A stretch of 64,000 nt of DNA from Basidiobolus meristosporus CBS 931.73. Lineage: Eukaryota; Fungi; Basidiobolomycota. Both the position numbers and the translations under genes were made by a program. The notes beneath the pieces were generated by a model that did not search any database, had not been told where the DNA came from, and saw only the letters and a program-made list of their open reading frames with translations. This document shows, piece by piece, positions 20,494 to 64,000 of this stretch (the first letter of the stretch is position 1; the number at the start of each line of letters is the position of its first letter). The DNA is taken from the NCBI GenBank assembly GCA_002104905.1, contig MCFE01000031.1, positions 154,346 through 218,345 on the forward strand, given 5' to 3'.

Positions 20494-20983
20494 ATTGAGG
20501 AGGAAGCAAGAAAAGGCACTACTCGATCAAGCCAGGACGATTTTTTATTTCGAATAGATCCTCTACGAGGAAGCACCACAAGATAATCAAAATGGTTGGT
20601 CGCACTATATCTGTGATGTTGTCGTGTCTAGTCTACCCCACATCAACCGCCGCCATGATCTTATTTTTTTACCCAGCGGTGGTCAATTGGTGCCTTCAGC
20701 CTTTGAAAATCAATCCAGAAATGGAAATTAAATGGCAAAGTAATGGTTGATAACCGAAAGAATACCCACCGAGCCACAATTCAGTCAGAATTTCAAATCA
20801 TTCTCTGTGATTATCTGCCTCACAAAGGCCGAGCTGTTCCGAATAAGTAGTTTGATTCCTGTGGCTTGAGGGGGGATTTCGGATCTTGTGATGAAGCAAT
20901 ATAATCTAGGGAAAGATATTGGATTAAACCGCTTTGTGTTTAAACCGGGGTTTAAGTGTTTAGGATTAGGGTTAGGGGTTCTT

Positions 20984-43338: not shown

Positions 43339-43836
43339 GAAAATAACGAGTATGAAGATTTGACCAGTCAACATCAACTTTTATATTGTTCGTACACTTT
43401 CGTCATCTGGTACCGTGACGCATGTGTGCTGTCCATAACAGTGGTCCAGGCAGATGTGGCTGAGAATACCAGTGCACCCTCGTGACTAGGTACCCATATA
43501 TTCTAGGCACTATTGGTGCTTATCAAATTAAATTGCTGTCATTTGCAATAGCACTAAACTCGGCTCATTTATCGAAGCCACTGGTAAACCAACCAAATGG
43601 TAATATATTATCGTACAGTAAGTGTTAATGACCGCATATTTCGATATATCCTTAATAAAATGTTCCATTTCGACTGGGATAATATATATTTAGTCCTAAT
43701 GAGGGTTAGGGTTAGCTACCCCAGCAGATCCACCGCTGAGCAAGGGCATCCACGTGATTTTTTTCGATCGGTTTCCCGAGGAATATTCGAACATAAAACT
43801 ATCATCCTTCGGAAAAAACACCTTCTCTCTTCGTGA

Positions 43837-50700: not shown

Positions 50701-50805
50701 TGGTAGCCAAGTTTAATTCCATCAGATTGATATTGGCAATTGCAGCCAAATACAAGTTTTTTATACATCAAATGGAAGTAAAAGCTGCATTTTTAAATAG
50801 AGAAC
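47719..50805 (+). mobile_element. Ty1/copia LTR retrotransposon, degraded copy 1 (5' LTR 47719-48050, gag-pol with stops and frameshifts, truncated in RT)
   Basis: LTR starts TGTTGTAAAA; degenerate PBS GATTATGAGCCC; [34 protein letters not shown]. Ends at a CTAGGGGGG junction. Confidence 0.96.
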
Positions 50806-51746
50806 CTAGGGGGGAGACAGTCACCAACAGGTGATATCTTTATTTCAGTTGAAACATAGAAGTCAGCACTACTTTTATAGCTTTGATACTGTTGTAAGAG
50901 TCTTGGAGATATTGGAAGTGATTTGGAGAACAAGTAGATTATGTGGTCTTCACTTAATGATTTATTGAATGTAAAAATAATATTTATACTTTTACATGGT
51001 CTTGGCATTACACACATGTAGAATAGGTTAAGGAAGGTCCCAAGAACATGTGTGCAAAGTTTGGGGCTGCTTGGACCACTTTGAGAATTCTCATGTTTTG
51101 GGTACCTGGTATTTTGGTGAAAATATTCTAAGTAAATCCCGATAAGGAATTTGGTCAGTATTCTCTAGGATTTGAAGGTGATGATCTAAGTGACTAAGTT
51201 AGGTGAATATTTAGGTGGAAATACAAACTTTACAACAGATACAAGAGTGTGTGGCTGAGGGGAATATGTAGGTAAGTTAACAAGAAGTGATGATAGTTCT
51301 TCAGTGCTCAAGACACTGTTCAGTGGGAAGGGGGGTAGCAAGAGGGGTAAGAATGATTTGTGAGCAACATTAATGAGGGGAATAAGATAAGGATTGATAT
51401 TTATCATAAAGGGAGTGTGCTGCTTCAGATATTGCTGCCAAAGGTCTGTCAAGTACTTCAGGTAGGCCAGCTTGGGTTTTTCTGACTGCAGAATATAGCA
51501 AACTTCTTGACTTCAGGATTGCCAAGTATAGTTCTCCAGCAGGAGTCAGGTGTAGTGTGGTGTGTTCTCTTCCAGGCCTTGATTAGTGGGTTGTTGCAGT
51601 GGTGAAGTCTGAGATATAATCCAGTTCTAAGGTACAGAAGTCTGATCTTATAGGGCATAAACCCAAAAGCACCAAGAATAGCATGTCTGTAGGGGCATTC
51701 AGGCAGATGAGGCACCAGGGATGTAATGCACCAGACTGCAAACTTG
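50806..51746 (-). mobile_element. Telomere-type non-LTR unit, family B, copy 1 (3' part of RT ORF, degraded), interrupted by a solo LTR
   Basis: Aligns with 56131-56725; PHLPECPYRHAILGAFGFMPYKIRLLY; terminal TCACC-AACA-GGTGA hairpin. Confidence 0.88.
50890..51237 (-). mobile_element. Solo copia LTR (348 bp) with 5-bp target-site duplication GATAC
   Basis: Reverse complement of the LTR at 57291-57638; TGTTGTAA..TTACAACA termini; GATAC at 50885-50889 and 51238-51242. Confidence 0.96.
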
Positions 51747-54700
51747 TTAGGGTGTAGGTGTTATAGTAAGGGCTAGGAAAAGGTTAGAAGAGCAGGGGGT
51801 CTGGAAGAAACAGTCCCCTAGAGCATAAAAAAGCAAGGGGTTTGGGGGATGCAATCCCCCATACTGCTCCCATACTTTTTAAATTCCCTTTGGATTACTT
51901 TTCTCTCATTCTTAGTTCTGGTCCCTTAGGGTTAGAATTCCTCCTCATAACCCTTATCACCCTAACCATAAATATTTTTACCCTTGTTGTATCCAAGAGA
52001 AAGTGTAATAAAACTCTTGAATGATTTAACTGAACCAAAGGGACAATTAAGTGCAGAATCTTAGAATTGTCAGAGAGTGGCGGAAATATTAGCAGAAAGA
52101 TTCTGATCTAATATTGGTCTTGGATATAGCTGGGTTGGCTATAAAGGCAATGATATTTGTTTGCTAGGCAGGCTAGGCTTGGTGTTCTTTGGAGTGCTAG
52201 ATATACTAGGCTTGGATAGAAACTAGAACGGAATTGTTGGATTCTTATTTTTGCTGAGACAGAATCTTAATTTCGTTGAGACACACACTAAACCAAAAGG
52301 TTCAGTAAACTTTATTTATACTTTTCTGATCAAGTTGAATTAGTCAGCGCCAAGGGACTGGATTGATTGAAATCAATTTGGGTGTTCATAGGTGCATAAG
52401 ATAAATGAAAATTACATCATCAATCAACTGATGTCTTGGCAACTGCACAGTGGTTGGATAGATCTCAGATGACTAATCACCTGGGAAGGCTTGGCAGATA
52501 GGTTGATAACGTAATGACCATTTGGAAATAGATCAGGTGTGATAGCTAAAAATAGATTCTGAGGTGGGATAAAATAAACTGTAACTGGGATTTGTTATGT
52601 TTGGGTTAGGGAAAATCAGTTAGGGTACTAGATTTTCAAACGGAGTAAAATTGGCTAAGTTTTAAATGTTGATGCACAACAACCCTACAATTGGCACATT
52701 GTCTGCTCATATAGTGGGCAAGTCTAGGCCAATATTTATCTCCCTGTACTGTCCATATGCTCTGTATAAATCTTAATGACTGTTTAATTAATAAATTGTT
52801 ACTTTTAATGTATATCTAATAATTAATGGGAATCATCCCAAACTGGCCACAATCCCATATTTTGATAAGCTTTGGGCACCATAAATTGCACGGCCCTAAT
52901 ATGATAAAAAATTCATGGCCAATACAAATTTTCTGTAACCCAATTGCTTTTACCAAATATAAAGTGTATCCCAAAGTTCAATATATATTATGGCTATAAT
53001 AGAAACTTTATTTGACACCATTGCAACTACTACTTGTGTTCTATGTGCACATGTATCCTGCAGGAATCGTAAAACTTAGCCACATAGTACAAAAGTGTTT
53101 TTATTTTTCATCATGATAGTTTTACATGAGTTCCTAACGCACTTTGGAAGTACACAGTAGCCATACCCCAACAGGTTTTAAGGATGTCCACTAGCTACGT
53201 CTACTTGTGTCTAACAAGAGCCATCAATCATCAGCTGTGTGATACTGAAATGCTTTTATTTTTCATCATACTAGTTTTGTATGAATCCCTAACGCACTTT
53301 CATAGTGCACGGTAACCATACCCCAACAGGTTTTAAGGATACCCACTTGCTATGTTTACTTGTGTCTAGCAGGAGTCATCAATCATCAGCTGTGCGGTAA
53401 TAAAGTGCTTTTATTTTTCATCACAATAGTTTTACATGAGTCCCTAACGCACTTTCATAGTGTGCGGTAACCATACCCCCAGAAAGTAGTGTGGATGCTT
53501 ACTTTAAACGCTCACTTGTGTATTGTAGGGACTATCAACAAACAGCCGTGTGGGAATGGAACATCATAGAAAAGTATTGCTTTGTTGTTAGCAAGTATTG
53601 ATGCGCAAATATTGGTACAATGTGAATTATTGAGTAACTATTTACTTTAGTTGGTTCCATGATATTCCTAGACAATATGCTCAAAATCAATATTAGCATC
53701 AATAGCTTGCTCTTTGATCACTAAACCACCGCACCCAATATGTGGTGGTCTTGGTTTTGTCTAGCCATCAAGGAATGAAACCAGAGTACAGTCACAAGAG
53801 AGGCAAAAGTGAAATGTGATGAAGTAAGTGTATATGAAAGTAATATAAATCTACAGGACAGAAGAGAACAACTAGTAGTTGAACAGCACTCACTGACACT
53901 CCACCAAGTAGAGCACCAACACGGACAATAAATAAGCCATGAGGGGAAAGCTTAAGGACCGCTACTTGGGGATCAAGACCAAAAGAGGAAGCTGCCTCTA
54001 CCATAGCAGTCCTTGTGCTCCAAAGGAAGACCAAGAGTCTACTATAGACAAAGATTGTGGCAAGAAGAGCAGTACAATTACCAGTCTGGTAGTGGTACCT
54101 TTGGAAGTCCCAAATACCTGGAGAAAACTTGGAAAAAATTGGCAGATGACTCAGTTGCCCTGAGGAGAAAACAAACCAATGCAATTGAGCAGTTCCAAAA
54201 TGAACTTCAGCTTAGTTCTTCTTTGCCTCACTATAAAGTACTCCAAGTGGCTTATTTGGATTATAAGCGTATGAAGGAGAATCAGGCAGAGACTGATAAA
54301 TTAAGTGATAGTCAATTGCATCACTTCTTAGATCAGGTAGAGAAACAGTTGCACAGCCAAGAGACGGAACAAGAATTGACAATTACAGAAACTAAATAAT
54401 TTTGCCAATGTAGTTTTGCATATTAATAAAATAAAAGGGTGTTAATAAGAACAGAATAAAGTTAACTATGTGTACATCAAATGATTCAAATACTGGCTAG
54501 ATGGATGTTACATAGGAGCAAGAAGCTCAGTAACCTCAAAGGAAAGATATGATAAATGGGCCACCAACATCATCCAAATGAGTATAAAAGTGGAGAAAGT
54601 AGACATAATCCTTCATAAAAAACAAGAAGCATGGAAGCAGGCAGTAGCCAGGTAGATGCCAGGAGTGAAGGTAGAGTACAAAGAGAGCAAGGAAGGGGAC

Positions 54701-55068
54701 AAGGATGTGGAAGAGGACGCAGAACTGGGCGCAAAAGAGGAAGAGGGCAAGGAAGTGGCCAAATCCAAGAGGAGTGTGAAGGAGGTGTTGCAGCAAATGT
54801 GAATGATGCTGAGCAAGTTGCTGTTGTCACTACCAGGCAGCCGGTTAACCAAGTTTCCCAAGCATTATCAAAGGTTTGACAAGAGCTTCTGGAATATAGG
54901 ACAACATTGCACCATGAGATATTGCAACATATGTGCCAGGAGATTAAGCAGAGGAGGGGTGATATTGTAAAGCTAAATCAGGATATTGCTGGACTTCAAG
55001 CCCAGATTGATTTCAGTTTCCACCATTCTACTGAGGCATTAGTGGCACAAATGGTGGAAAAGTTTGCC
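51747..55068. other. Unassigned 3.3-kb segment D, bounded by TTAGGG junctions; decayed ORFs, GC hairpins and a tandem repeat
   Basis: Its first 39 bp or so recur at 56094-56134; hairpins GGGGGATGCAATCCCCC near 51845; no recognisable protein family. Confidence 0.5.
53092..53480. repeat. Tandem repeat, 155-bp period, about 2.5 copies
   Basis: TG(T/C)TTTTATTTTTCATC recurs at 53096, 53251 and 53406 with matching intervening sequence. Confidence 0.9.
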
Positions 55069-55107
55069 TTAGGGTTAGGGGGGAGACAGTCACCAACAGG
55101 TGAGATC
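55069..55107 (-). mobile_element. 39-bp stub of a family B 3' end (telomeric repeats plus first hairpin only)
   Basis: TTAGGGTTAGGGGGGAGACAGTCACCAACAGGTGAGATC followed immediately by another TTAGGGTTAGGG. Confidence 0.85.
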
Positions 55108-55363
55108 TTAGGGTTAGGGGGGAGGGAAAGTCACCAAGTTGGTGAAATCTTTATTTGAGTTAAGAACTAATCTAAGTACAAATAGAGAAGCCAATTTAGA
55201 GGTCTAGAATCTCTCTAATAAGTAATCTAATTTATGTTTTGTTTCATCTCTAATGTTTGTTTCAATAGAGTAAAGCTCATCAGGGGTAAATATAAAATTC
55301 AGGAGTTTTGGGGGAAGTACAAATTGTAGATGTTTCTGATCAATATAATCCAAGACTGGAACC
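55108..55363 (-). mobile_element. 256-bp 3' stub of a family A unit
   Basis: Near-identical to 60742-60990; truncated at GGAACC|TTAGGG. Confidence 0.9.
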
Positions 55364-56090
55364 TTAGGGTTAGGGGGGGGATGATAATCACCACAGGGTG
55401 AAATCTTTATTTAAATCATAAATAAAGAAGCCAAATTTGAATAAGAATAGTTGAGATGCAGAAAGCCTACAAGATAAACTTGGACTTTGCTGTATCCCAA
55501 ATATCCTCAATATTGAAGTCTAGAGGAGAATGTAGCAAAACTGCTTGTTCACTGTAGTATTTCTTGAGGAAGTTTGTGACTTGAAGGTAAGGAGAGTTTT
55601 TCAACAAGCTGGTAAACCTTTTGAGGAGTTCTTTCTCCAGAGAGAATGGTACAAAGAGTGGAATGTCCAAATGATGTCTGAATATATGCTCTGAGAGCTC
55701 CCAATCCAGCATATTTTTGACTTCTTCTGTAAAATCTTCAACAATATCTTTGTCAAGAATAACTTCCAAGAGATCCCTGGCAATGTACTGAATGTTAATA
55801 ATCTTAGGCATATGAATACCTAGGACCTTGAGGTAATTTTGTTGTTCTGAAATTGGGAGATAGCCAGCATTTCTGAAATAGCAAACAGCCCAATTGGCAG
55901 TGGGAGGAGTATCAGGGCTGACAGGGAATCTTCTTCTAGCTTTAGGGTGCACTGGCTTAGGTGACTGTCTTGTTGAAAGGGCAGCTGGCTTTGGATGAGC
56001 TTGAAGTGCTTGGGAGTATGTCAGAGTATGAATGGCAGGAGTTGCTGGTTGCTGACAGTGGTCAGATTGACTGGAAGAAGAGCTGGTTGA
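55364..56090 (-). mobile_element. Family C1 unit: 5'-truncated ORF1/Gag-like-only element (ORF open 56087 to 55467)
   Basis: TYSQAL..WAVCYFRNAGYLPISEQ..LEVILDK..LLHSPL; homologous to 62952-63654; ends in the shared double hairpin and CCCTAA. Confidence 0.82.
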
Positions 56091-56130
56091 GGGTTAGGGT
56101 GTAGGTGTTATAGTAAGGGCTAGGAAAAGG
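56091..56130 (-). mobile_element. About 40-bp stub of the segment D terminus
   Basis: TTAGGGTGTAGGTGTTATAGTAAGGGCTAGGAAAAGGTTAG is identical to 51747-51787. Confidence 0.8.
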
Positions 56131-57290
56131 TTAGGGGGGAGACAGTCACCAACAGGTGAAATCTTTATTTCAGTTGAAACAAAGAAGCCAGTACTACTGT
56201 TGTAGCTTTGATACAAGAGTGTGTAGCTGAGGGGAATTAGTAGGTAAGTTAATAAGAAGTGATGATAGTTCTTCAGTGCTCAAGACACTGTTCAGTGGGA
56301 AGGGGGGTAGCAAGAGAGGTAAGAATGACTTGTGAACAACATTAATGAGGGGAATGTGATAAGGGTTGACATTCATCATAAAGGGAGTGTGCTGCTGCAG
56401 ATATTGCTGCCAAAGGTCTGTCAAGTACTTCAGGTGGGCCAGCTTGGGTTTTTCGGACTGCAGAATAAATTCAGCAAACTTCTTGACTTCAGGATCTCCA
56501 AGTATAGTTCTCCAGCAGGAGCCAGGTGTAGTGTGGTGTGTTCTCTTCCAGGCCTTAATCAGTGGGTTGTTGCAGTTGTGAAGTCTGAGGTATAATCTGG
56601 TTCCAAGGTAGAGAAGTCTGATCTTATAGGGCATAAACCCAAAAGCACCAAGAATAGCATGTCTGTAGGGGCATTCAGGCAAATGAGGCACCAAGGAGGT
56701 AATGCACCATACTGCAAACTTGTCAAGCTTAGTGCAGTCTCTAGAAGTAAGAGAGAGAAGTGGTAAGCCAAATTCCAGGACAGGGAAGACAAACGGCTTG
56801 AGTAGAAGAAGGCAGCTGGGAGCTGAAGTTGTAGGAGGAGTAACAGCCAGTAGCTTGTGGAGTGCCTGTCTTGCCAGGATAATTCTCTTCTTCAGGTGTG
56901 CTCCAGAGTCTAGTCCAGTAGAAAGGAAAGGAAAGCCAAGATATGTAGAAGAAACCTGAGCAGGTAGAGTGGAGTTCTCCAAGTTGATGGGAGAGCCCAA
57001 AGGAACTGTCTTTGCAATGGAAAGCTGGAGATTATTCTTCTGCAGATACTGGTGGATGGTCTGGGAGTCTTGTTGCACATTGGAGGAGGATATTCTGATG
57101 TCATCAGCAAAGAGAGTAACCAGGCAGTCAGCTGAGAGTCTTGGGAAATCATTCAGGAAGATGGCAAACAGTATAGGACCAAGCACAGAGCCTTAAACCA
57201 CTCCATTAGGAACTGAGAACACAGCTGATTGCTCACTTGGGTGCAGAATTCTTGCTTGTGGATCCAGAAACAGAGACCTGACAAGGAGGG
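56131..57290 (-). mobile_element. Telomere-type non-LTR unit, family B, copy 2 (RT palm to C-terminus; nonsense codon in the QG motif)
   Basis: NGVV*GSVLGPILF..TLFADD..YLG..VLEFGL; 5' side cut by copia insertion at 57291. Confidence 0.92.
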
Positions 57291-60200
57291 TGTTGTAAAA
57301 ATTTGTAATTCCACCTAAATATTCACCTAACTTAGTCACTTAGATCATTTCCCTCAAATTCTAGAGAATACTGACCAAATTCCTTGTCGGGATTTACTTA
57401 GAATATTTTCACCAAAATACCAGGTACCCAGAACATGAAAATTCTCAAAGTTGTCCAAACAGCCCCAAACTTGCACACATGTTCTTGGGACCTTCCTTAA
57501 CCTATTCTACGTGTTTGTTATGCCAAGACCATGTAAAAGTATAAATACTACTTTTACATTCAATAAATCATTAAGTGAAAACCACATAATCTACTTGTTC
57601 TCCCAATCACTTCCAATATCTCCAAGACTCTTACAACAGGTTATGAGCCCCGAGCTGTCACTCTCTGCAATGTCTACTACTGCTATTACTGGAATTTTTC
57701 CCTCTGCTGGAAAGTTGGATGGATCCAACTACCAAGTGTGGAAGGTGAAGATGAAGATGCTGTTGCAAGAAAGAGGCCTTTGGGATATTGTCATGGGAGA
57801 AGAATGCCCTCCTAAAAACGTGGGAGAGGAAGCCTTAAAGTACCAGAAGAAAGAACAAAGTGCCTTTAACTGCATTTGCCTTAATGTCAAGGACAAATTG
57901 CTAATTCAATGCTCAAGAGCAAAAACGGCAAAGAATGCCTGGAAAGCATTAGAAGACACCTACCAGTCATGTTCAGCTGCCAAGAAAATGTATCTGAGAA
58001 GAAAATTCTTTACTACAAAGATGCTGCCAGGAGAAGAAATGAAAAATCTAATTATCAGAATTACCCTGCTGGTAGATGAGATGGAATCGGTGGGCGTACC
58101 AACTACTGATGAGGATGTGATAGTTACCATCCTGAATAGCCTGACAGACAAGTTTCAGGGCCTTGTATCAGCCCTAGAGTCCAGAACTGAAGATTTGACC
58201 TTAAATTATGTATATGGAAGGCTCCTGGATGAAGAATTAAGCAAATCAAGCGCCAATAAGAAGGAAGAAGAAAATGCTTTAATAAGCAATGATAACCAAC
58301 AAAGGAGGTACCCAAGACCCTACAAAGGCAACAGCAACCTATTTTGCAACTACTGCAAAAGGAAAGGACACACATCAGACCGGTGTTTCAAAAAGAGAGA
58401 TTATCAGCAAAAGAAGCCTGAATATGGAAATGCTGCAACAACTGAAGATAGACTATTCATATCTGCACTAAATATGACCACAAACAAGGATTCTCAGACG
58501 TGGTATATTGACTCTGGAGCTTCTCAACACTTTACACACCAAAAAGAACTTTTTACCCAATATCAAGAAATTCCAATTAAGAAGGTTTTCATGGGTGACA
58601 ATAGAACACTTGATGCAGTGGGAGAAGGAACTATCCAAGTAAACCTTAGAAGCAGTGAAGGAAGCCATACACTGACCTTTAAAGAAGTACTCTATGTACC
58701 AGAAATAGCCAAGAACCTACTCTCTGTAAGCAAGGCCACAGCAGAAGGACTCAGTTTCAGTTTTGACAATTCTGGATGCAGGATCACTGATCAAAATGGT
58801 GCCCATATTGCTTCGAGCATCAGAGATCAGAATCTATACAAGTTGACTTATATTCCATCATATCTGGAAGCCAATATAAGTAACTTAAATGAAGAAACAC
58901 CAATGCTTTGGCACAGGAGATTTGGACACATCAATTTTGATTATTTGCGTAAAATGATCAAAGATCAGCTAATTTCTGGAGTGAAAATTGATCCCCCAGC
59001 TAATTTGGAGCACTGTGAAGCCTGCATATATGGGAAACAAGCCAGACAACCGTTCAAGAGCTCTGGGTTAATCAAAACTAAGAAAAAATTAGATCTAATT
59101 CACTCAGATCTGTGTGGACCTATACAAAATTTATCCTTAGGCGGGATGAAGTATTTAATCACTTTTATTGATGATTATACAAGATACACATGGGTCTACT
59201 TCATGGAGAGAAAGGAAGAAGCTCTGTCTAAGCTCAGGGAGTTTAAAGCCATGGTGGAGAGAGAAACTGGTGAAAAAATCAAGAAAATACGCTCTGACAA
59301 TGGAGGAGAATATACCTCAAAACTTTTCATTCACTTCTGCAAAATTCATGGGATAAAGCAAGAGACTACTGTACCATACTCCCCACAGCAAAATGGAGTA
59401 GCAGAACAAGCTAACAGATCAATAATTGATATGGCAAGATCTATGATCCATGATCAAAAATTATCCTATGATTTTTGGGCGGAATCAGTTGCCACTGCTG
59501 TATATCTTAAAAATAGGAGTTATAACAGAATACTTCGTGATTCTACTCCATTTGAAGCATGGTATGGATACAGACCAAGTGCAGAACATCTAAGAATATT
59601 TGGGTGTACAGCATATGCCAAAAAACTGGCCGGAAATCAGTCAAAATTTGAGCCAAAAAGTGTAAAATGCATATTTTTGGGCTACTGCAATGAGAGTAAG
59701 GCATACAGACTCTACAATACCGAAGCAAAGAAGCTGATCAAGTCCAGGGATGTGTTGTTTGATGAAAATTCAAAATTTTCACAAAAAATGACATCAGATG
59801 ATGACAAAAATTTGATCTCAAGTCCACCAATTGTCAGGATTGAATCAGAGCAAAACAATGAAAATTTTTTCACTCCAGAGGACTCTACAACCGTGGTTCA
59901 GCCAGAATCAGTGCCCAGGAATATCCCAGAAGTGATCATTCCAGTATCAAATGCCCGGAGATCAAATCGGACAAGAAATAGCCCAAATTACTATATTAAT
60001 GAGGGTACAAACTTAGCCTATGCCTATTCAGTCCATATTGATGAACCCCAGACTGTAAAAGAGGCCCTAAATAGCCCTCAGACGAAGTTTTGGAGATCTG
60101 CAATGACTGAGGAATATCAGGCCCTGATGGAAAATCAAACTTGGGACTTAGTCAAATTACCAATCAACCGAAAATCAATTGGATGCAGATGGGTCTTCAA

Positions 60201-60741
60201 GACAAAGTACAAGGCTGATGGTACAATTGAAAGATACAAAGCAAGACTTGTAGCCAAAGGATACTCTCAAACAAAAGGACTTGACTATACTGAGACCTTT
60301 GCACCGGTAGCCAAGTTTAATTCCATCAGATTAATATTGGCTATTGCAGCCAAATATAAGTTTTTTATTCATCAAATGGATGTAAAAACTGCATTTTTGA
60401 ATGGAGAACTTGCTGAGGACGTGTATATGGACCAGCCTGATGGGTTTGTTGACCAAGATAACCCCCATTTGGTCTGCAAGCTTAAAAAGTCACTATATGG
60501 TCTCAAACAATCACCAAGAGCCTGGAATTGCAAGATAGATTCTTATTTGGAATCTTTGAGTTTCAAAAGGAGTAATGCTGACTATAGTATATACTATAAG
60601 CCAGATAGAGCCAATCCAGTTCTATTAGCTCTATATGTGGATGATCTTATTATAGCCACCAATAACCTAGAAACATTGGAAGAAACTAAATCCAGCCTAT
60701 CTAAGGAGTTCAAGATGTCCAATCTAGGAGAACTTAGTTAC
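57291..60741 (+). mobile_element. Ty1/copia LTR retrotransposon copy 2 (5' LTR 57291-57638, PBS 57639-57650, open gag-pol truncated after RT YVDD; no RNase H or 3' LTR)
   Basis: CNYCKRKGHTSDRC knuckle, WYIDSGASQH protease, HSDLCGP/DDYTR/SDNGGEY/NGVAEQ integrase before RT (copia domain order), LYVDDLII. Confidence 0.98.
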
Positions 60742-62813
60742 TTAGGGGAGGGAAAGTCACCAAGTTGGTGAAATCTTTATTTGAGTTAAGAACTAATCTA
60801 GGTACAAATAAAGAAGCCAATTAAGAGGTCTAGAACCTCTCTAATAAATAATCTAATTTATGTTTTGTTTCATCTCTAATGTTTGTTTCAATAAAGTAAA
60901 GCTCATCAGGGGTAAATATAAAATTCAGGGGTTTTGGGGGAAGTACAAATTGTAGATGTTTCTGATCAATATAATCCAAGACTGGAACCCAGCCTGGGAT
61001 TAGGTGTAGTAGGAAAGGTGTGTGGACTTGTAAGTAGCTCTGCCACATAGATCTTAGATGGTCCTGAGCCAGTAGTCTTGGTTTCTCAGCTTTTTGAAGT
61101 TTTGAAGCAAGCTCTGTTACTACAGCAGAGCCAACCAGGGTGTGCCAGCAAGAAGATTTCAGGGAGGAGTTAGATTGAAGCCATTGTTTGATGGAGGGGT
61201 TATGTGATTTCTGAAGTTTGACTAGGAAGGAAGCACGGAGATAGACCATTTGGATTTGGTATGGGTAGAAGCCAAAGGCTCCATTAGTTGCATGGATATA
61301 GGGAGATACTGGAAGATAAGGTACCAAGGATCTGATACACTGATGGAGAAATTTATCCAGGCGGTGAAGTTCTCTGGAGGTTAGGGGTATAATGTGGAGA
61401 CCAAACTCAAGTACCGGCAGTACATACTGCTTCAGAAGTATAGGGATCTTTTGAAATGGAGTGTCTGGAGTGACTACTACCAGAAGCTTTTTGAGAGCCT
61501 GTTGAGCAAGACGGATCCTATTATTCAGGTGGAGCTTTGAGTCAATCCCATGTTGACAAAATGGCAGACCTAGATATATTGCAGTTTGTTGTGGCAGAAT
61601 GGTAGTGTTCTGTATAGTTGTAGTGCATCCAATTGGGACTGTCTTGGAAATTGAGAGTGAGAGGTTGTTGGCAGCCAAGTACTTCTCAATGATGGCAGTG
61701 TCTGCTATGGGATTAGGAGTAGCAATCTTGATATCATCCGCATAGAGAGTTAGTAGTGGATAGGGAGAGTCTGGTGAGGGGCCTTTTGGAAATAAAGGAA
61801 AGTCATGTAGGAATATCACAAATAGTAAGGGACCTAGTACAGATCCTTGGACTACTCCATTTGGAACCTCATAAGTCTCTGATGTACAACTTGGATGCAA
61901 AATTTTGGCTGAGTTCTCACAAAATAGAGAACGTACAAGAAGGGTCATTGGTAGTGTGGTAACTGCTAATAGCTTTCTCCAAAGCAGAGCTCTGTCCACA
62001 GAGTCAAAGGCTTTAGTAATGTCAAACAGAATGGTTGGCAATGAGAATTGAAGTGAATGATCATGGCTTAGCACTACAGCCATATCCAAGGAGAGTTTGG
62101 GCAAGAAGCCAAACTGAGAAGGATGGAATGGATATAGTTGAGATTGCAAGGATCTTGCAATTATAAGCTCAAAGATTTTCCGGCAGGTTGGCAGGAGTGA
62201 AACTGGCCGGTAAGAACCTGGGAGTGAGTGTTTCCCCTTCCCTTTGTATAAGGGTATTACATTTGCCTGTGACCAGGCCTTTGGGGTAGTCAATTGTTGG
62301 GCACAGATAGAGTAGAATGGGAGAAGTAAGTGACTCATTTTGGAGTAGCACACCCGGAGTAGATCGCAGGTAATCAAGTCATGTCCAGGTGCAGTATTTG
62401 CAGGAAGCTTCTTTAAAATTTTCTCCAGAAGCTTTGCTGAAGCCAAAATTGGAGATGTTGGACTGCTAGATATGTTACCAGTATGGTAGAAAGGAGGAGT
62501 GGGATGCACGGTTGAATCAAAGAATATAGGGGCCAGTTTGTCTGGTGATGGTATACTCCTTGCTTGGGGTCTCATGGCTTTATATACTCTTGATATGGAC
62601 CTTGTGGTGGCATTCATATTTACTAAGGGCAAGGTATCCATGATATGAGCCCATAATCTAGTATGCTCAGTGATCTGTAGTGACTTGGAGTAGGAGATTG
62701 CGCTTTCCAGGAGGTTCTGTGTTTTTGGGTTAGGGAAACATAGGTAGCTGGAATTTAAGGCAGAAATGATGGATTTCCATTTAAGTTGGTTTGCAGATGG
62801 CTTTTGGTAGGAC
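60742..62813 (-). mobile_element. Telomere-type non-LTR unit, family A: 5'-truncated but uninterrupted RT ORF (about 660 aa, stop at 60830)
   Basis: APGHD, YRPVSLL, QFGF, FDITKAFDSVDR, GVVQGSVLGPLLF, LYADD, YLG; no zinc knuckle or nuclease motif C-terminal to RT. Confidence 0.95.
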
Positions 62814-63654
62814 TTAGGGGTTAGGGGAGGGAAAGTCACCAAGGTAGGTGAAATCTTTATTTGATTTCAGACAAGTCTAACTACAAATAAAGAAGCCAGT
62901 TGGGAATAGAAGATTCCCAAAGTATAAACACTAAGTTGAATATGAATAAATCTAAGCTAAAGTTAAGGCAGTATCCCAGAGTACACTGGAGTTCAGGTTC
63001 ATGGGGGAGTGAAGTAGATAAGCTTGAGAGATATAATAATCTTTGAGGAAGTGGGTAACAGCAGGTGAAGGGGAGTTTTTGATAAGTAAAGTGAATCTTG
63101 AGAGCAGAGATTCCTCTAAGGAGAAGGTCTTGTAAACCGGAGAATCAGGAAACTCTTTAAAGGCATGGTCAGTAGGTTCCCAGTAAAGCTGGTCAGAGAC
63201 ATTTTGAGAGAACTCTTTAGCAATACTTTTGTCAAGTACTACCTCCAGAGTATGATGGTTGATAAATCTCATGTTAACAATCTTGGATAAGTTGTAACCT
63301 TGTTGCTTGAGATACATCCTATGCTCAGATATAGGAATAAACTCCACATTGGCAAAGTAGCAGACAGCCCAGTCAGTAGCAGGAGGCAAATTGGAAGTGG
63401 CAGGAAACTTTCTTTTAGTCTTGGGAGGAGCAGCAGGATGTCTTGAGGAAGCAGGAACAGGCTTTTTGACAGCTTCAGAGTAGGAAGAGTGAGCAGGAGC
63501 AAATGATTCTTGGGGAGTCTTGTTGACAGGAAGAGCTGGCACAGGGACAATAGATTCTTGCAGATCAGAAAAGGCAGAAAACAGCTTTTGAACTTGTTTC
63601 TTGAGTAAAGCATTTTCAGCTTCAACAAGTGCAAGCCTTTCCTCAAGGAAGGAG
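62814..63654 (-). mobile_element. Family C2 unit a: 5'-truncated ORF1/Gag-like-only element (ORF stop at 62952)
   Basis: Coiled coil (EERLALVEAENALLKKQVQKL), SYSEAV, Pro-rich linker, WAVCYF domain; shared 3' structure. Confidence 0.85.
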
Positions 63655-64000
63655 GTTAGGGGAGGGAAAGTCACCAAAGTAGGTGAAATCTTTATTTGAT
63701 TTCAGACAAGTATAACTACAAATAAAGAAGCCAGCTGGGAATAGAAGATTCCCAAAGTAAACACTAAGTTGAATATGAATAAATCTAAGCTAAAGTTAAG
63801 GCAGTATCCCAGAGTACACTGGAGTTCAGGTTCATAGGGGAGTGAAGTAGATAAGCTTGAGAGATATAATAATCTTTGAGGAAGTGGGTAACAGCAGGTG
63901 AAGGGGAGTTTTTGATAAGTGAAGTGAATCTTGAGAGCAGAGATTCCTCTAATGAGAAGGTCTTGTAAACTGGAGAATCAGGAAACTCTTTGAAGGCATG
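63655..64000 (-). mobile_element. Family C2 unit b: tandem near-identical copy, runs off the window
   Basis: Repeats 62819-63170 at an offset of about 835 bp; ORF stop at 63785. Confidence 0.9.

Follow-up and report, generated by a model that had tools for sequence, protein, structure and literature searches.

The window analysed here is a stretch of 64,000 nt from contig MCFE01000031.1 of Basidiobolus meristosporus CBS 931.73 (positions 154,346-218,345, forward strand), and all coordinates below are positions within it unless another contig is named. It contains eight copies of a short structured module, six of them intact, one decayed and one partial, all of which lie on the minus strand together with the open reading frames (ORFs) that they adjoin (Table 1). 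A combined pattern of hairpin 1 and the first arm of hairpin 2 has six exact matches on the plus strand, at 55131, 55388, 56146, 60757, 62836 and 63671, and no matches (zero expected) in 100 shuffles of the sequence.

On the plus strand, each copy in the window is preceded by one or two TTAGGG repeats and then a run of G. The copy at 55364-55433 illustrates the layout: two TTAGGG, the G-run and a short linker, and then TCACC-ACAG-GGTGA, AA, an AT-rich inverted repeat of 10 bp whose loop is 5 nt, and AGCCA. In the sense RNA the order is UGGCU, stem-loop 2, UU, stem-loop 1, a linker of consensus YUNUCH, a run of four to nine C, and one to three CCCUAA units, for an overall tail length of 60-85 nt. 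Stem-loop 2 consists of a 10-bp AU-rich stem, with the sequence AAUAAA in its 3' arm, and a free apical part; stem-loop 1 has a CACC/GGUG core. The loops vary freely in sequence and in length, from 3 to approximately 26 nt, while the stems hold. Families A and C2 possess a common apical insertion in hairpin 2.

Much of this layout had been described in the original prediction, which was based on the plus strand of the window. The hairpin 1 loops that it listed (AACA in family B, AAGTT in A, ACAG in C1, and AAGGTA or AAAGTA in C2) are all present, as are the inner pairs of hairpin 2 (G-C in A at 60774 and in C2 at 62854, A-T in C1 at 55404, and C-G in B at 56162). It correctly placed the module at the extreme 3' end, directly 5' of the C-run and CCCUAA tail, and correctly saw AAUAAA as buried, the hexamer lying in the 3' arm of hairpin 2. 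The mismatch that it noted in family B exists as A·C on the plus strand, but it is no mismatch in the sense RNA, where the pair is G·U. The AGCCA that it called invariant is only nearly so, because UGACU and UAGCU are found besides UGGCU in the RNA.

Table 1. Modules, adjoining ORFs and relics in the window.
Feature	Position	Strand	Description
C1 telomere-complement tail	55364..55380	-	Two CCCUAA units (RNA sense) and eight C
C1 linker	55381..55387	-	Pyrimidine-rich, single-stranded, consensus YUNUCH, between hairpin 1 and C-run
C1 hairpin 1	55388..55401	-	Invariant CACC/GGUG core, closing pair U-A, 4-nt loop
C1 hairpin 2	55404..55428	-	10-bp AU-rich stem, 5-nt loop, AAUAAA in 3' arm (RNA sense)
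C1 UGGCU	55429..55433	-	5' boundary of module, nearly invariant
C1 body	55467..55952	-	ORF homologous to C-terminal part of ORF1 of full-length relatives; ORF1-only, 5'-truncated
Family A module	60742..60823	-	Long apical insertion in hairpin 2; abuts copia truncated inside its RT
Family A ORF2	60830..62842	-	RVT_1; 5'-truncated, without the endonuclease part present in 67%-identical P0001
Family B module	56129..56194 (layout seen at 56131)	-	G·U at pair 6, C-G at top pair
Family B ORF2	56194..57186	-	C-terminal part, 75% identical to P0002
Family C2 module	62817..62902 (layout seen at 62814)	-	
C2 body	62952..63653	-	ORF1-like C-terminal ORF
Second C2 module	63654..63737 (layout seen at 63656)	-	Unit 97% identical
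Module of family A relic	55111..55197 (layout seen at 55108)	-	245-nt relic; one C·A mismatch acquired in stem 2
Family B relic	55069..55107	-	~30 nt: tail and hairpin 1 only, then new TTAGGG joint
Decayed family B module	50805..50875	-	Caps second truncated copia

Elements that carry the module

The ORF adjoining the family A module encodes a reverse transcriptase (RT) of the RVT_1 family, and the ORF adjoining the family B module encodes the C-terminal part of another, 45% identical to it. The ORFs of C1 and C2, whose ORF1-like products are 49% identical to each other, match only ORF1, over its C-terminal third (25-35% identity) and running to the ORF1 end. Judged by these homologies, A and B are 5'-truncated ORF2 copies from one LINE clade, and C1 and C2 are non-autonomous, ORF1-only partners; the module does not belong to four unrelated 3' UTRs, as had been supposed, but to this clade and its ORF1-only derivatives.

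ORF2 has few close relatives, P0001-P0006, of which one is annotated in Basidiobolus meristosporus. After these the score drops sharply, and the next matches are ordinary LINEs with APE endonuclease domains. Relatives of the RT outside its clade are all distant (23-36% identical) and of LINE type, and the best matches of the RT among solved structures are to LINE-1 ORF2p. The clade was found only in Basidiobolus genomes and a few uncharacterised assemblies. The contigs of full-length relatives encode a coiled-coil ORF1 of 430-500 aa and an ORF2 of 820-920 aa that combines RVT_1 with an Exo_endo_phos domain at the N-terminus; Pfam matches to Exo_endo_phos or Exo_endo_phos_2 plus RVT_1 were obtained for P0001, P0003, P0004, P0005 and L003. 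Across the clade the endonuclease motifs GDLN..HPEN, CVDW and SDH do not vary, and from this motif conservation the clade is predicted to keep an active APE endonuclease. Because full-length relatives carry this endonuclease, copy A is a 5'-truncated element and not one of an endonuclease-less type.

In every ORF2-bearing relative the module starts 3-12 nt past the ORF2 stop codon, and the 3' UTR of the autonomous elements consists of little else. Between families, identity over the last 300 nt of ORF2 is approximately 59%; the paired core of the module is almost invariant.

A conserved leader (CATC repeats ... AAAAGCAGTC) is common to the full-length elements P3 and P4, at positions 1-135 of L005 and at 1-63 and 5046-5075 of L007. 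It reaches beyond the 5' end of the element in L006, which places the true 5' end further upstream. L007 looks like a tandem assembly.

The next-best RT relative, P0121, is a distantly related LINE-like RT encoded in a tandem array with a period of approximately 3.87 kb (L132; GCA_032884065.1, CM065067.1) on a 42.8-Mb chromosome of another organism, where the array is annotated as a single 1996-aa protein. This locus was rejected as a carrier: it has no module, and its CCCTAA strings are coding sequence.

Further copies and families

Further copies of the module were found in the B. meristosporus contigs L002 and L133 and in several Logan/ENA contigs. A covariance model built from 18 sequences gave 29 full matches, none of them in unrelated loci. 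The model finds seven copies in the window and 17 in the six loci aligned, with further copies in other loci. The alignment analysed below comprises 24 sequences, and 11 sequence families are distinguished (A, B, C1, C2, P1-P4, X, Y and E). In the Logan DNA contigs of one sample, one run yields 3619 matching contig pieces, and there are many alternative joints, which shows that the families are highly repeated in that DNA sample; with thousands of matching DNA pieces, a large copy set for R-scape therefore exists.

Contigs L134-L138, which contain ORF1 homologues, added no new module family because they either end inside ORF2 or repeat family P3. A scan of metagenomes with a 19-base pattern returned at least 120 matches, none of them with a full module, and these were set aside as chance matches. 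Rfam covariance models (hammerheads included), run over 54000-64000 at E values up to 1, gave no match on any module; the only matches in this interval are three inside the copia element, below gathering scores.

Selection for the fold in the sense RNA

Standard pairs occupy 97% of cells in the 24-sequence alignment, compared with 39-57% when the 3' partners are slid by one to three columns. Both sides have changed at four of the 15 pairs, a count that was reached by 0-2 of 500 shuffles, and none of the 500 matched either the paired fraction or the covariation score. Three of the compensated pairs are in stem 2, where family Y has A-U in place of C-G at pair 2, family P3 has A-U in place of U-A at pair 9, and the top pair takes five pair types; the fourth closes hairpin 1 and is A-U instead of U-A in family Y. 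Independent compensatory events are few, approximately one each at three of the pairs. The covariation first reported from the window concerned a single pair, and its extension to four came with the addition of relatives.

RNAalifold, to which the helices were not supplied, predicted the same two helices, and the minimum-energy fold of each family is identical in layout. Six wobbles are present at the family level; every one reads G·U on the sense strand, where the antisense strand would have A·C. Folding z-scores range from -3.3 to -4.2 for the sense strand and from -0.9 to -2.3 for the antisense strand. The slid-partner control, the shuffles, RNAalifold and the sense-only G·U pairs thus agree with the selected structure that was originally proposed, and these comparative data show that the fold is selected and belongs to the sense RNA of the element.

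Seven of the 15 pairs are without any variation among the 24 copies. At the stem positions that never vary, which are the majority, structure is inseparable from direct sequence readout. In the middle of stem 2, families P1 and E have G·A and A·A mismatches, and in family E a different helix replaces the upper half of this stem. A search by eye for a pseudoknot partner of UGGCU or of the loops found none.

Joints and array organisation

Twenty-six joints were compiled from the window and from contigs L002, L003, L005-L007 and L133. The sense tail at these joints consists of C(4-9), followed by zero to two full UAACCC units and a partial unit; 15 of the 26 tails stop exactly after UAA, and joint phase is otherwise variable. 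Of the 15 UAA ends, 12 have a G directly after them and five have GG, the G content of the sense strand being 0.165, and on the plus strand the same bias appears as C or CC immediately before TTAGGG. This bias could be due to a templated RNA end, a nick-site preference or microhomology. No A-tract is present at any of the 26 joints, and therefore a poly(A) tail, if one is added to the RNA, is not copied. Wherever the parent sequence is available, the break in the preceding element falls at an arbitrary position, and the microhomology is 0-2 nt. Joints carry only zero to three telomere repeats.

The arrays are head-to-tail and of the same polarity, their units being linked by short TTAGGG tracts with the 3' ends toward the contig interior; the 5' ends point to the contig end in L002 and L133, and to the right end in the window. 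Neither the window nor L002 shows a long terminal TTAGGG tract. In two copia copies the sequence breaks off inside RT and a unit follows. The joints fit equally well with direct priming on chromosome ends and with repeated endonuclease-dependent insertion into regenerated TTAGGG, which has been proposed for MoTeR arrays (PMC8381367).

The family B relic at 55069-55107 ends past hairpin 1 and before stem 2, and the next TTAGGG joint shares TT with it; it is the sole case of cDNA synthesis stopping between the hairpins. Exactly at the joint of unit A, the copia frame (60733-60748) reads Tyr-Leu-Gly (TAC TTA GGG), so that copia may have contained a native TTAGGG, which would have been the target or the microhomology for unit A.

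Proposed function of the module

The best reading of the module is that it is a structured 3' tail of an APE-type LINE clade, of the stringent type, fused to a C-run and a CCCUAA priming sequence. The tail is common to RT-encoding and non-RT elements, as are the RT-recognition tails of stringent LINEs and of SART1, and by analogy with these the two hairpins are probably the handle by which ORF2p selects its template. ORF2p would bind both hairpins of the RNA that encodes it (in cis) and of the RNAs of ORF1-only partners (in trans), and the single-stranded end, consisting of the C-run and CCCUAA, would anneal to a TTAGGG-bearing 3'-OH, provided either by a nick of the element's endonuclease or by a natural or eroded chromosome end. 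Reverse transcription would start there, run through the hairpins and often abort early, which would give rise to the relics of 30 nt to 2 kb.

The AAUAAA hexamer in the 3' arm of stem 2 may have a further role. It is identical in all 24 copies and all 11 families, while its pairing partners vary, three families having G for A and P1 and E having mismatches. The columns directly flanking it (48, 49 and 56) also show changes, and an A-to-G change inside the hexamer, which would retain U·G pairing, was never observed. Because AAUAAA is invariant while its partners change, the pattern hints at a second, sequence-specific role, as a poly(A) signal or a protein contact, and suggests that at least part of the conservation is for 3'-end formation and not for RT binding.

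Such a role could be extended to the whole module, which would then serve mainly in 3'-end formation: hairpin 2 would present or mask AAUAAA, cleavage would be directed to the C-run or to the first UAA, approximately 30 nt further downstream, hairpin 1 would set the spacing, and each element of an array would be given its own defined RNA end, RT recognition being secondary or absent. The behaviour of the hexamer agrees with this, as do its distance of approximately 30-32 nt from the first UAA in A, B and C1 and the frequency with which tails at joints stop exactly after UAA. However, the DNA joints are devoid of A-tracts, and a poly(A) signal alone has no need of hairpin 1, the linker or a covarying top pair, which makes it unlikely that 3'-end formation is the main role of the module.

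A telomerase-like mode of action, with the CCCUAA end aligned on a G-overhang without any endonuclease, the hairpins serving as a boundary or anchor helix and the arrays constituting a system of end maintenance or healing, is quite unlikely. It is in keeping with the uniform polarity and inward 3' ends of the window and two B. meristosporus contigs, with the two copia copies that are interrupted within RT and followed by a unit, and with the few repeats, arbitrary cut points and scant microhomology at joints, and it has a precedent in endonuclease-less Penelope-like elements with telomere-complement 3' ends (PMC8557442). On the other hand, endonuclease-dependent insertion into regenerated TTAGGG, on the model of MoTeR arrays, would give the same joints, and the window and L002 lack a terminal telomere tract. 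Since the clade retains a conserved APE endonuclease, endonuclease-free priming on chromosome ends is not required. The template-boundary helix of telomerase, which is 5' of the template, stops reverse transcription. The likeness to such a helix that was drawn in the original prediction does not hold for the Basidiobolus module, where both hairpins, with sequence upstream of them, are present in all DNA copies except one relic and are thus read through by the RT.

Conservation at the level of DNA or primary sequence, as a protein-binding palindrome, as a second-strand fold-back, or as homogenisation by template switching or gene conversion between neighbours, could explain the unvarying pairs and the apical insertion common to A and C2 (a possible 3'-end exchange), but is very improbable in view of the compensatory changes at four pairs, the strand-specific G·U pairs and the free variation of loops between stems that hold, and recent homogenisation fails as an explanation because the families span different samples and ORF2 lineages only 45-75% identical.

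The tail may also make the LINE RT a backup telomerase: CCCUAA(G) would align on eroded or broken chromosome ends, and RT-encoding and ORF1-only elements would be added head-to-tail. This proposal is possible but doubtful; if true, Basidiobolus would have end healing of the HeT-A/TART kind beside ordinary TTAGGG telomeres.

Comparison with known retroelements

In stringent LINEs such as UnaL2 of eel and ZfL2-1 and ZfL2-2 of zebrafish, ORF2p binds a 3' stem-loop that is shared with SINE partners, by means of a region between EN and RT (PMC4176376, PMC1636434). The Basidiobolus elements resemble these in having a stem-loop at the very 3' end, short terminal repeats in place of poly(A), and non-autonomous partners that share the tail. 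They differ in possessing two hairpins, a C-run, and a terminal repeat that is the complement of the host telomere; moreover, their partners are ORF1-only elements instead of SINEs, and their host is a zygomycete fungus.

Like the TRAS1 and SART1 elements of Bombyx, the Basidiobolus elements are LINEs with ORF1, APE endonuclease and RT that reside in telomeric repeats in a single orientation. SART1 proteins recognise the SART1 3' UTR in trans and mobilise a reporter that carries it, and short telomere-like stretches of SART1 RNA have been proposed to anneal to the target (PMC7265360). Whereas SART1 has a 3' UTR of several hundred nucleotides and needs a poly(A) end for accurate initiation, the Basidiobolus tail is 60-85 nt long, has no A-tract and ends in CCCUAA. 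The fixed repeat position and poly(A) joint of the TRAS/SART type are not found in Basidiobolus, where joint phase is variable and the 26 joints are free of A-tracts.

The HeT-A, TART and TAHRE elements of Drosophila are arranged head-to-tail with their 3' ends centromere-ward, are frequently 5'-truncated, and include a gag-only partner, HeT-A (PMC5537684, PMC2173066). Array polarity, 5' truncation and the presence of a gag-only partner beside RT-encoding elements are thus common to both systems. In contrast, the Drosophila joins are poly(A) and the host lacks telomerase repeats, whereas TTAGGG is found at every joint in Basidiobolus. To our knowledge, no shared short structured tail of this kind has been described for HeT-A, TART or TAHRE.

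The 3' ends of Athena and Coprina elements include short telomere-complement stretches that are thought to pair with G-overhangs (PMC8557442, PMC3846280). These resemble the ends of the Basidiobolus elements, but Athena and Coprina have a Penelope/TERT-like RT and no endonuclease, in contrast to the LINE-type RVT_1 and APE domain of the Basidiobolus clade. A Penelope-like or hammerhead identity was considered and rejected: the RT is of LINE type with APE, its best structural matches are to LINE-1 ORF2p, and no Rfam hammerhead falls on the modules.

The fungal elements MoTeR, FoTeR and Cnl1 are similar in being non-LTR elements stacked at chromosome ends, with short telomere tracts between them and very short 5'-truncated relics (PMC8381367, PMC12857005). 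They belong to the CRE/SLACS clade and have a single ORF with a C-terminal restriction-enzyme-like endonuclease (PMC12857005), whereas in the Basidiobolus clade the endonuclease is of APE type and N-terminal, and ORF1 is separate. Because the known fungal telomeric retroelements belong to a different clade, the Basidiobolus elements point to an independent origin of telomere-associated retrotransposition.

The Basidiobolus retrotransposon group is apparently undescribed, and a search of one literature collection for Basidiobolus telomere-associated retrotransposons found nothing relevant. LINE RTs that recognise structured 3' tails and LINEs that live in telomeres were already known separately, and the group combines such known parts (a stringent 3' tail, telomere association, a gag-only partner and a telomere-complement end); it is the arrangement and the host that are new. 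The system occurs in an early-diverging fungus, with both a gag-only partner and an APE endonuclease. Its two covarying hairpins, invariant AAUAAA and telomere-complement priming end constitute a testable model for the coupling of template recognition with primer alignment, and provide a small RNA for probing the step from retrotransposon RT to telomerase-like priming.

Other repeats and telomere-like motifs in the window

An identical 42-nt degenerate telomere-like tract is present at two joints (51746-51787 and 56093-56134). After the first of these, at 51787-51870, there is a different repeat with G/C-rich hairpins, which may be the 3' end of another element family without the double hairpin. 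The junction between the tract and this repeat recurs in several DNA contigs, among the loose ends at 56134.

Outside the array, isolated double TTAGGG motifs are found at 20960-20977 and 43700-43713, one of them approximately 160 nt upstream of a ubiquitin coding start. These look like promoter sites of the telobox type and not like element joints.

The decayed family B copy contains a 349-bp insertion (50889-51237), the reverse complement, at 94% identity, of 57291-57639, which is located just upstream of the long copia ORF. From its sequence and position, this insertion is probably a solo LTR of that copia.
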